This document shows positions 1 to 1,599 of a stretch of 64,000 nt of DNA, in pieces (position 1 is the first letter of the stretch; each line of letters begins with the position of its first letter). A program made the translations under genes and the position numbers. Location: sequence record PV785814.1. The stretch is one strand, 5' to 3'. Under the pieces are notes generated by a model. That model saw only the letters and a list, made by a program, of their open reading frames with translations, did not search any database and was not told the origin of the DNA.

Positions 1-90
1 TCTTCAATGTCCAAGGCAAATAGGACTATGAATACTAGTGCGAGAAGATAGACAATCAAATTGCTCACCTCGCTTTGTTAGTGAGAGTAC
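1..90 (-). ncRNA. Putative structured RNA: H-type pseudoknot plus hairpin, probably truncated at the window edge
   Basis: Minus strand CUCAC(L1)GCGAG-GUGAG(L3 with CAAU/AUUG hairpin)CUCGC, followed by a UUCA/GUCC...GGAC/UGAA hairpin; no ORF here. Confidence 0.45.
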
Positions 91-92
91 AT

Positions 93-215
93 TGGTCGAG
101 TGTAACAGAATCGAACTGTTCCCACGATCTCCCTATGATATGCGTAAATTGGTTGCTGAATATAATCATGTCTGATTACAGTATGCTACGTGTGCTGCCA
201 CTACACCAACACTCG
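93..215 (-). ncRNA. tRNA-like stable RNA (123 nt): acceptor stem, D arm, T arm and encoded CCA, anticodon arm replaced by an insert
   Basis: CGAGUGU/ACACUCG acceptor stem + A + CCA; D stem GUGU/GCAC with AGUGGCA loop; T arm AACAG-UUCGAUU-CUGUU; enclosed by a 21-bp perfect inverted repeat (83-103/209-229). Confidence 0.75.
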
Positions 216-230
216 ACCAATGTACTCTCG

Positions 231-380
231 ATATTTTAAATGTGCGCTACTTGCACGCCGACTGAGCGAATTTTAACTCAGCTAGTTTTGTTCGTGAGTT
301 AGTCCGCTAAGACTTCTCGCTGCTCGGCAGAACTTAACTGCCCCTATGTATTCATTGCGGCTAGCGCACATTTAAAATAT
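231..380 (-). ncRNA. Putative multi-hairpin RNA closed by a 19-bp perfect duplex
   Basis: Inverted repeat atattttaaatgtgcgcta (231-249)/tagcgcacatttaaaatat (362-380); internal hairpins GGCAG/CUGCC, UUAG-CGGA-CUAA, CUGAG/CUCAG. Confidence 0.6.
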
Positions 381-381
381 T

Positions 382-487
382 ACTCATCTTCAGCAAAGAG
401 ACAGAAACGATGAGTCTAGTCTGTTTAATCAAGTTGTTCATCTTCAATGAAGAGGCGAGAACGATGAACTCTAGCTCGCTTAATCAA
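382..487 (-). repeat. Two tandem 54-55 nt units, each folding into the same H-type pseudoknot
   Basis: Units share UUGAUUAA leader, CUAG loop, GUU linker; stems covary (ACAGA/UCUGU vs GCGAG/CUCGC; ACUCAUC/GAUGAGU vs GUUCAUC/GAUGAAC). Confidence 0.75.
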
Positions 488-495
488 CTGTGTTA

Positions 496-523
496 ATCTT
501 ATCAGCTTTTCAGCGAAAGTCAA
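496..523 (-). promoter_or_regulatory. Sigma70-type promoter P2 of the ncRNA array
   Basis: TTGACT-16 nt-TAAGAT on minus strand with upstream A-tract. Confidence 0.6.
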
Positions 524-588
524 CATCTTTTTTCAAGTATTTCATCGAGTTAAGATTTTGTTTTCTGTCTCTCGACTCGATGAAATAC

Positions 589-616
589 ATTCTACATCCT
601 TTTCAGATGAAGTCAA
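589..616 (-). promoter_or_regulatory. Sigma70-type promoter P1 of the ncRNA array
   Basis: TTGACT-16 nt-TAGAAT on minus strand; spacer similar to P2; 14-bp inverted repeat (537-550/575-588) lies between P1 and P2. Confidence 0.6.
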
Positions 617-633
617 CAACTTTTTTAAAGTTT

Positions 634-888
634 TTAAGCGGAGATGATAATACCGCTTTCAGTCTCGCCTCGTTCAAGCGCAGCGTGCTTGATTTGAAGT
701 TGCGAAACTGCTTGCTGAAGTTCAAGAATAGCTTTGTCGTAAAGTTTGTTGTTCTCTTTAAGCAAAGTAATCTGATCGGTCTGCAAACCAACTACGTACG
801 TCAATAGAACGACGTTTTCATCAGAGTTCAGTGATTCAGGGTCTTCTTGATACTTTCGCAGCACTGCTTCAGTAGATAAGTCAGTCAT
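634..888 (-). CDS. Hypothetical coiled-coil protein
   Basis: ORF overlapping the 57B stop; ATG at 888; heptad-like C-terminal half. Confidence 0.6.
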   Translation of the reverse strand: MTDLSTEAVLRKYQEDPESLNSDENVVLLTYVVGLQTDQITLLKENNKLYDKAILELQQAVSQLQIKHAALERGETESGIIISA

Positions 889-1336
889 TATTTTCAACCC
901 AATCTAGGTCTAGTGGTTCGAGATATTCATTAACAAGACGAACTTCAGTGTTAACGGACATCGGTGTGATAGCGTCGTCATACGATAACGTGACGTGCGG
1001 TTGATAGTCAGGGTAGTCGTGAGTACCACCGATAGAGATAAGGTCTTCGTGACGCGCTACAAGAGCAGGACATGACATCTTAGCAACGACAGCGTGCTTA
1101 CCGTCTTGCGTTTTCCAACAGTCAATTTGTTCGACAGTGGCAACGAAAGTGGTATCTACTACAGGCACATCAATTTGCTTACGACTATAAAGCACAGTCA
1201 CGTGAAATTTATCTGGATCTAACGGATTTTTTAAACGAAGCGTTTGTTGCAATCGAACAAGTTCTTGCTTACTCGCTTCGTCTAATCTGATACCAACGTA
1301 AGTTCCCTGACTCTCAAGGAACTTAGATAGTTTCAT
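881..1336 (-). CDS. 57B: gp57B / Acb1 anti-CBASS 2H phosphoesterase
   Basis: Two HxT motifs (FHVT, PHVT); WKTQDG, HDYPDYQPHVTLSY and EPLDLDW match T4 gp57B; position next to 57A. Confidence 0.92.
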   Translation of the reverse strand: MKLSKFLESQGTYVGIRLDEASKQELVRLQQTLRLKNPLDPDKFHVTVLYSRKQIDVPVVDTTFVATVEQIDCWKTQDGKHAVVAKMSCPALVARHEDLISIGGTHDYPDYQPHVTLSYDDAITPMSVNTEVRLVNEYLEPLDLDWVENND

Positions 1337-1599
1337 TATTCAGCTTCTTCTTCTACAGCTTCGACCTCAACAGGTCGTTCAGCTTTGCCAGTTAGGTAAG
1401 CGATTTCGTCAACGTAGTTCTGAAGAGAACTTGCTTTTTCTTGATCGAAATCTAGTAGTTGCGCTAGTACACCTACGAATTGACCGAATGAGTTACGTTC
1501 AGCTTGAAGAGCTTCTTGTAGGTCAAAGGTACGAACTTTAAGATCTTTGATTACTGCTTCTTTCTGCTCGATTACTTGTTCTGGAGTTTGTTGTGACAT
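1336..1599 (-). CDS. 57A: gp57A tail fibre assembly chaperone
   Basis: Short acidic coiled-coil, MSQQT...LKVRTFDLQ resembles T4 57A; synteny 1-57A-57B. Confidence 0.8.
   Translation of the reverse strand: MSQQTPEQVIEQKEAVIKDLKVRTFDLQEALQAERNSFGQFVGVLAQLLDFDQEKASSLQNYVDEIAYLTGKAERPVEVEAVEEEAE

Follow-up and report, generated by a model that had tools for sequence, protein, structure and literature searches.

A toxin-less, antitoxin-like pseudoknot array at the head of the tRNA cluster of KVP40-like vibriophages

The DNA analysed here, referred to throughout as the window, is a stretch of 64,000 nt from sequence record PV785814.1, which is 100% identical to Vibrio phage QD01, 88-93% identical to KVP40, phi-pp2, nt-1, ValKK3 and other phages; for relatives further removed the identity is about 73-81%. 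On the minus strand, the genes gp3, gp1, 57A, 57B and an ORF of 87 aa follow one another and are succeeded by non-coding DNA at positions 1-640, a region that is single-copy in each of about 50 KVP40-like (Schizotequatrovirus/Mylasvirus) genomes. The homologue of T4 57B is acb1 (881-1336, minus strand), encoding an anti-CBASS 2H phosphodiesterase, as identified by the Pfam family PF23474 (E = 4e-46) and by synteny with T6; in the records of this phage group it mostly appears as an RNA ligase or a hypothetical protein (“57B / RNA ligase”). The 87-aa ORF (634-897, minus strand; phrog_15958), which is conserved, separates acb1 from the array of RNA pseudoknots that is the subject of this work, so that the array lies one small ORF downstream of acb1. 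In T6 the same gene order continues with genes for internal proteins and then with the tRNA cluster, and therefore the pseudoknots occupy a variable slot between acb1 and the tRNA cluster, of which the array is the first RNA. The KVP40-like cluster of tRNA and tRNA-like genes has been described in publications as a region of about 9 kb with 29-30 tRNAs.

Two promoter-like elements precede the array on the minus strand, both conserved in the aligned relatives (13 phages in the case of P1): P1 (589-616), of the form TTGACT-16-TAGAAT and situated within direct repeat D1, and P2 (496-523), of the form TTGACT-16-TAAGAT with an upstream TG. Both are sigma-70-like, and the start predicted for P2 falls about 5-10 nt before the first pseudoknot unit, which puts the array right behind a promoter of the early type. 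The module containing the promoter is duplicated as a 42-nt direct repeat (506-547 and 599-640; 81% identity, spacing 93 nt), hence the tandem promoters, and between P1 and P2 lies a conserved hairpin (537-588, minus strand; inverted repeat I3) with 19-nt arms and a loop whose length varies among the aligned phages. The sequence CTGATAAGAWT, which is found in the -10 region of P2 (496-505), also occurs in the inserts of two tRNA-like genes of a related locus (L004, at about 2640-2650 and 2775-2785 on the minus strand), and the 3' end of the pseudoknot unit (CTGAAGATGA) is similar to it.

Downstream of the array there is no toxin ORF, no conserved ORF and no ribosome-binding site; structured RNAs and tRNA-like genes are found instead, and no intrinsic terminator is predicted on the minus strand in window positions 1-1400 or across the whole tRNA cluster. 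The array is adjoined by RNA1 (231-380, minus strand), a structured RNA whose ends pair in a perfect 19-bp stem (231-249/362-380; inverted repeat I2) that was delineated with the alignment of relatives, and then by a tRNA-like RNA (83-229, minus strand) with acceptor, D and T arms and a non-canonical centre, enclosed by a perfect 21-bp stem (83-103/209-229; inverted repeat I1) and annotated in phi-pp2 as “trnX / tRNA-OTHER”. These stems of 19-21 bp, 100% complementary, may serve, like those of rRNA operons, as sites where double-strand-specific processing takes place. In phage VH7D (locus L013) most of RNA1 is deleted (corresponding to window positions of about 257-328) and both pseudoknot units are kept; RNA1 is therefore dispensable, and the pseudoknots are not. 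Phage R10Z, which shows the same coverage of 84% as VH7D in the table of blast matches, probably carries the same deletion.

The array consists of two homologous units on the minus strand (487-380), each of about 54 nt and together of about 106 nt, in which the octamer UUGAUUAA is followed by the 5' strand of a first stem (S1a, 5 bp), CUAG(A), the 5' strand of a second stem (S2a, 7 bp), GUU, S1b, a 12-nt loop, S2b and a short AU-rich linker. Unit A (433-487) is composed of the octamer at 487-480, S1 at 479-475/459-455, the loop L1 at 474-470, S2 at 469-463/442-436, L2 (GUU) at 462-460, the long loop L3 at 454-443 and the linker at 435-433; in unit B (380-432) the octamer is at 432-425, S1 at 424-420/405-401, L1 at 419-416, S2 at 415-409/388-382, L2 (GUU) at 408-406, L3 at 400-389 and an AU-rich 3' tail at 381-380. 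Both units were delimited by covariation, by the alignment of relatives and by a strict descriptor. The two-unit architecture proposed in the original prediction is thus present in the sequence, and Tandem Repeats Finder (TRF) reports it as a repeat with a period of 54, 2.1 copies and 78% matches, that is, 22% mismatches between the units. The pair counts given there were also reproduced, as the units differ from each other in 4 of 5 pairs of S1 and in 2 of 7 pairs of S2, all of them still Watson-Crick. The reading of L1 as CUAG holds for unit B and needs correction elsewhere: L1 is CUAGA in unit A of QD01, which has two 1-nt insertions relative to the related phages, and CUAA or CUGA in most relatives. 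No pairing is predicted for the linkers of 10-12 nt.

The strict descriptor (5/5 pairs in S1, 7/7 in S2, L2 = GUU) matches only units A and B in the 64 kb, both strands included. With a relaxed pseudoknot descriptor 343 matches are obtained in the window, so the bare geometry is not rare, and the z-scores of minimum free energy (MFE) folding, which cannot represent pseudoknots, are about 0. Because the geometry is common by chance and the z-scores are null, the significance of the motif rests on covariation. The region was aligned from 13 KVP40-like relatives, which yielded 15 distinct units, or 16 together with a marine lineage from Tara Oceans assemblies (alignment A2). Across these 16 units 99.6% of the cells pair in the pseudoknot as drawn, versus 36-50% when the 3' partners are slid, and both S1 and S2 are 100% paired. 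Changes on both sides of the pair are seen at 7 of the 12 S1/S2 pairs, three of the seven showing three pair types, and none of 500 shuffles reached a covariation score as high as that observed. Six haplotypes of S1 and four of S2 were found, all complementary; unit B of F86 and D482 has an S1 of only 4 bp, with an alignment gap at the fifth position. In phage 1.081.O, which has a single unit, S1 is of the B type and S2 of the A type on either strand of the respective helix, and a simple crossover would not give rise to this combination. The comparisons thus strongly support a pseudoknot fold that is real and under selection, the latter having been claimed from the two units of the window in the first place.

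The RNA is encoded by the minus strand, since the G.U pairs (one in S1 and seven in a 3-bp CUU/AAG mini-hairpin within the long loop) would be A.C on the opposite strand. The mini-hairpin itself is invariant across units and never varies, and therefore covariation neither supports nor refutes it. The invariant nucleotides are the single-stranded octamer, CUA, UYAUCGUU, CUCUU and UGAAGAU. The indels of the relatives across the array are of 1 nt and not multiples of three, which means that no ORF is conserved there and that the short CDSs annotated over the array are probably spurious. The KVP40 and QD01 records place short CDSs with non-conserved frames on top of the promoters and pseudoknots (412-636 on the plus strand and 425-526 on the minus strand, and 3282-3590 of L004).

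The element is present in all of the approximately 50 KVP40-like genomes, from phages of many Vibrio hosts, in two copies or in one. Two pattern scans of IMG/VR recovered real units in KVP40 and VH7D only, nearly all of the remaining matches being due to chance, and a search of the same database for loci anchored on Acb1 again found KVP40 and VH7D only. Three IMG/VR matches (L168, L176 and L185) have stems that look paired, but a variant (L179) breaks S1 and they were read as coding sequence. Among 185,579 bacterial and archaeal species, scanned with one genome per species, the pattern gave 43 matches, of which one was real and none belonged to a bacterial genome proper; with its 18 specified bases the pattern was strict and could have overlooked an original that has diverged. 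The sole real match is a marine contig binned as Chloroflexota, which belongs to the same viral lineage as the two real matches among the 13 obtained in a metagenome scan, both in Tara Oceans assemblies (CEUY01000564.1 / CEVA01033652.1). A blastn search of plasmids returned no related repeat.

The single unit of this Tara lineage has new compensatory stems, and its octamer, CUAG, UAUCGUU, CUCUU and UGAAGAU are identical to those of the KVP40-like units; the octamer is conserved at 8/8 positions between the unrelated phages. Duplicated TTGTAT-17-TATAAT promoters precede the unit by about 150 nt, and a canonical tRNA-Asn follows it at a distance of 10 nt. Almost all proteins of the Tara contigs remain without assignment, Pfam and PHROGs saying little about them, and tblastn of the Tara ORFs against the window and its flanks gave no match that would point to a shared phage-encoded partner, which is weak evidence as only about 14 kb of the lineage was covered. 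The lineage probably represents a marine phage not yet characterised, whose contig was binned into a metagenome-assembled genome (MAG) by mistake. The unit is thus a portable module, present in clusters of RNA genes both in the KVP40-like phages and in the Tara lineage, and so in at least two marine phages that are unrelated to each other. The Tara contigs (L247, 9100-11300 on the minus strand; L246; L226) carry a dense cluster of RNA genes, with the tRNA-Asn, several non-canonical RNAs bearing a T arm and duplicated modules of promoter plus hairpin.

The RNA motif matches no known RNA family. The covariance models of Rfam 15 have no match at gathering thresholds in the whole window, and in positions 1-1200, searched up to E = 10, all matches are at chance level (E of 2.6 or more) and concern unrelated families, of snoRNAs, microRNAs and sRNAs. 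Literature searches found no paper describing the motif, and it is rated here as a new one, a toxin-less, phage-borne, antitoxin-like pseudoknot array.

The likeness to antitoxins from toxin-antitoxin systems of type III, from which the original prediction started, proved to be partial overall and, in the case of the published TenpI arrays, closer than had been supposed there. The repeats of type III antitoxins are in general about 31-62 nt long and present in at least 1.9 copies, and those of the tenpIN systems, known from Vibrionales including Vibrio cholerae and from Alteromonadales, have 39-57 nt (mean 50.9) and 1.9-3.0 copies (PMC3401426). With a period of 54 and 2.1 copies the QD01 array falls within the general range, and phage 1.081.O and the Tara lineage have one unit. 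Many TenpI arrays consist of two non-identical repeats, up to 35% different, that form H-type pseudoknots; their single-stranded ends sit in a groove of the toxin, and one characterised cassette measures 102 nt (PMC13682666; PMC12283969). Like TenpI, the phage array comprises two tandem, non-identical repeats of about 50 nt in a cassette of about 100 nt, each unit being an H-type pseudoknot with single-stranded flanks, and has a promoter directly upstream; the TenpI family is, moreover, present in Vibrionales.

Repeat size, copy number and the H-type fold are thus shared, whereas the terminator, the toxin gene and the A-rich loop are lacking, and no counterpart was found in the bacterial genomes and plasmids searched. 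The array is an orphan, with no TenpN gene and no terminator, and no gene for a ToxN/CptN/TenpN endoribonuclease lies immediately downstream. The signature of TenpI is a conserved A-stretch in the long loop, an L1 of 1 nt and an S1 longer than S2 (PMC13682666; PMC12283969); by these published descriptions the phage units differ, since their L3 is pyrimidine-rich and has no conserved A-stretch, their L1 is of 4-5 nt and their S1 is shorter than S2. Unlike TenpI, moreover, the array resides in an RNA-gene operon of lytic phages, one unit suffices in two lineages, and no sequence relative was detected in the bacterial genome scan. No likeness to a host type III antitoxin was found with the strict pattern in the 185,579 species genomes or by blastn against plasmids.

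A phage-encoded parallel is pseudo-ToxI of the Pectobacterium phage PhiTE, which likewise consists of tandem pseudoknot repeats without a toxin and in variable copy number. Pseudo-ToxI is reportedly recognisably similar to the host ToxI, and is said to work only after expansion or recombination. The vibriophage units differ from it in having no detectable host counterpart and in being under long-term purifying selection across the whole phage group.

The presence of invariant loops and of an invariant single-stranded octamer on covarying helices points to sequence-specific recognition by a partner. The reading preferred here, which is tentative and to which a probability of about 0.3 is assigned, is that of a processed RNA that sequesters a protein and works as a decoy in the manner of an antitoxin. 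Each unit would be a stand-alone protein-binding module, in which a covarying H-type scaffold displays the invariant nucleotides. The precursor would be cut in the AU-rich linkers and at the processing sites of its neighbours, in the Tara lineage by RNase P at the tRNA next to the unit and in the KVP40-like phages at the neighbouring long stems, and the cutting would release compact, stable units. Once released, the units would act in trans, holding an RNA-binding or RNA-cleaving enzyme through their single-stranded flanks and loops, much as a type III (TenpI/CptI-like) antitoxin holds its endoribonuclease; conservation of the octamer at all positions in unrelated phages is as expected if the flanks contact a protein. 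As the units would be synthesised early by the phage, the inhibitor would persist after the shut-off of host transcription.

Features counted for a decoy are the TenpI-like architecture, the conserved flanks and the copy number of two or one, together with a counter-defence neighbourhood made up of acb1, the tRNA cluster and the slot occupied in T6 by genes for internal proteins. Counted against it are the lack of a terminator and a toxin gene, of an Rfam match and of a host original among the genomes and plasmids searched, and the absence of the TenpI hallmarks. Retention in all of the approximately 50 KVP40-like genomes, on many Vibrio hosts, resembles that of a core function and is likewise counted against, as is the identity of the loops in two lineages with no detectable protein in common, given the great diversity of type III antitoxins; a sporadic toxin is an unlikely constant target. 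A more specific version of the decoy is less likely still, namely that the units are antitoxin RNAs of a type III-like kind, fixed in nature without a toxin, in KVP40-like vibriophages and in an unrelated marine phage, made early from the tRNA operon and neutralising a ToxN/TenpN-family (or other RNA-inhibited) abortive-infection toxin, as a constitutive RNA counter-defence beside acb1.

Invariance of the loops in two unrelated lineages, always in RNA-gene clusters, is more in keeping with a conserved partner than with a host toxin of sporadic occurrence, and a cis-acting leader is nearly as likely as a decoy. The array would then head a long and largely untranslated operon of tRNAs and other non-coding RNAs, and the nascent pseudoknots would bind conserved host machinery of transcription or RNA processing, bringing about processive antitermination or an anti-Rho effect, as known for rrn leaders, HK022 put and EAR RNAs, or else organising or protecting the precursor. 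The setting suits such a role: the KVP40-like array stands a few nucleotides after the tandem P1/P2 promoters and heads the tRNA cluster, the Tara unit lies downstream of duplicated promoters and just before tRNA-Asn, and the element is retained in every KVP40-like genome. Loops that are identical in unrelated phages would accord with a partner found universally, for example RNA polymerase or the Nus factors, and the invariant CUCUU, which may recall the boxA core, is counted in favour as a lead. As in rrn boxA leaders, HK022 put and Bacillus EAR, a structured RNA lies just downstream of promoters at the head of a long untranslated operon, and rrn operons share the tandem promoters and the neighbouring RNAs flanked by long processing stems. 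Unlike these elements, however, the array has no match to them in sequence or in Rfam and no predicted intrinsic terminators to bypass, so the likeness is positional only. The lack of predicted intrinsic terminators downstream on the transcribed strand tells against a leader, as does the fact that the element is missing at the other promoters and RNA genes of both clusters. In the Tara lineage the unit would be cut off from the transcript by RNase P cleavage at the tRNA; invariant loops would be unnecessary in a 5' structure that only protects, and the duplication of the unit is left unexplained.

It is improbable, though the units have the typical pattern of covarying stems and invariant loops and junctions in a compact pseudoknot of about 44 nt, that they are ligand-sensing aptamers forming a tandem riboswitch or small self-cleaving ribozymes that process the polycistronic RNA. 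Their occurrence in unrelated genomes and their position between RNA genes that need separation would agree with either function. No such family is among the Rfam matches listed up to E = 10 in positions 1-1200, however, and a riboswitch would have no expression platform here, there being no terminator, ribosome-binding site or ORF downstream, and would, unusually for its class, be absent from the bacterial genome scan. A non-RNA element, be it a chance repeat, a protein-binding repeat in DNA or part of a small ORF, is effectively refuted by the covariation, for although short ORFs (425-526 on the minus and 490-807 on the plus strand) and deposited CDSs of QD01 and KVP40 overlap the region and the unit is similar at its 3' end to the -10 region of P2, the interleaved compensatory changes in two helices are inexplicable at the level of DNA or protein, the 1-nt indels of the relatives break any frame, and the G.U pairs are strand-specific.

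Three narrower candidates were rejected. Pairing of the octamer with the anticodon loop of tRNA-Asn fails because UUAAUC is absent from the QD01 cluster, and a mimic of AvcI, from the Vibrio AvcID system, because AvcI needs about 171 nt and is non-repetitive, and no Vibrio genome in the species scan matched the motif. The third candidate was an operator of the gene 32 type, rejected because two motif scans of the whole KVP40 genome found only the two copies of the array. The autoregulatory pseudoknot of gene 32 in T4-type phages (PMC3014915) is similar in being a small H-type pseudoknot in a T4-related phage, adjoining an AU-rich single-stranded sequence of the UUAA(A) type, whereas the vibriophage unit lies outside the gene 32 leader, is larger and has an embedded 12-nt loop.

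The motif is a small RNA with unusually clear covariation, both internal and across genomes, located between an anti-CBASS gene and a phage tRNA cluster in a much-studied group of phages. If the decoy reading is true, an antitoxin-like RNA would for the first time be known to be fixed throughout a phage genus, and RNA-based counter-defence would reach beyond the single case of PhiTE; a leader would instead show how T4-like phages secure the transcription of long untranslated tRNA clusters. On either reading a defined RNA of about 54 nt is available for structural work and for the identification of its partner.

The tRNA cluster of the KVP40-like phages also contains tRNA-like genes of 112-124 nt, in which the acceptor, D and T arms are canonical and about 40-45 nt are inserted at the anticodon loop. 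Such genes are found at window positions 83-229 on the minus strand, at 2569-2680, 2700-2835 and 877-989 of L004 and at 925-1045 of L014. They score 48-55 bits with the Rfam tRNA model, are annotated as pseudo or “OTHER” in the records, and could be intron-bearing or deliberately altered tRNAs.
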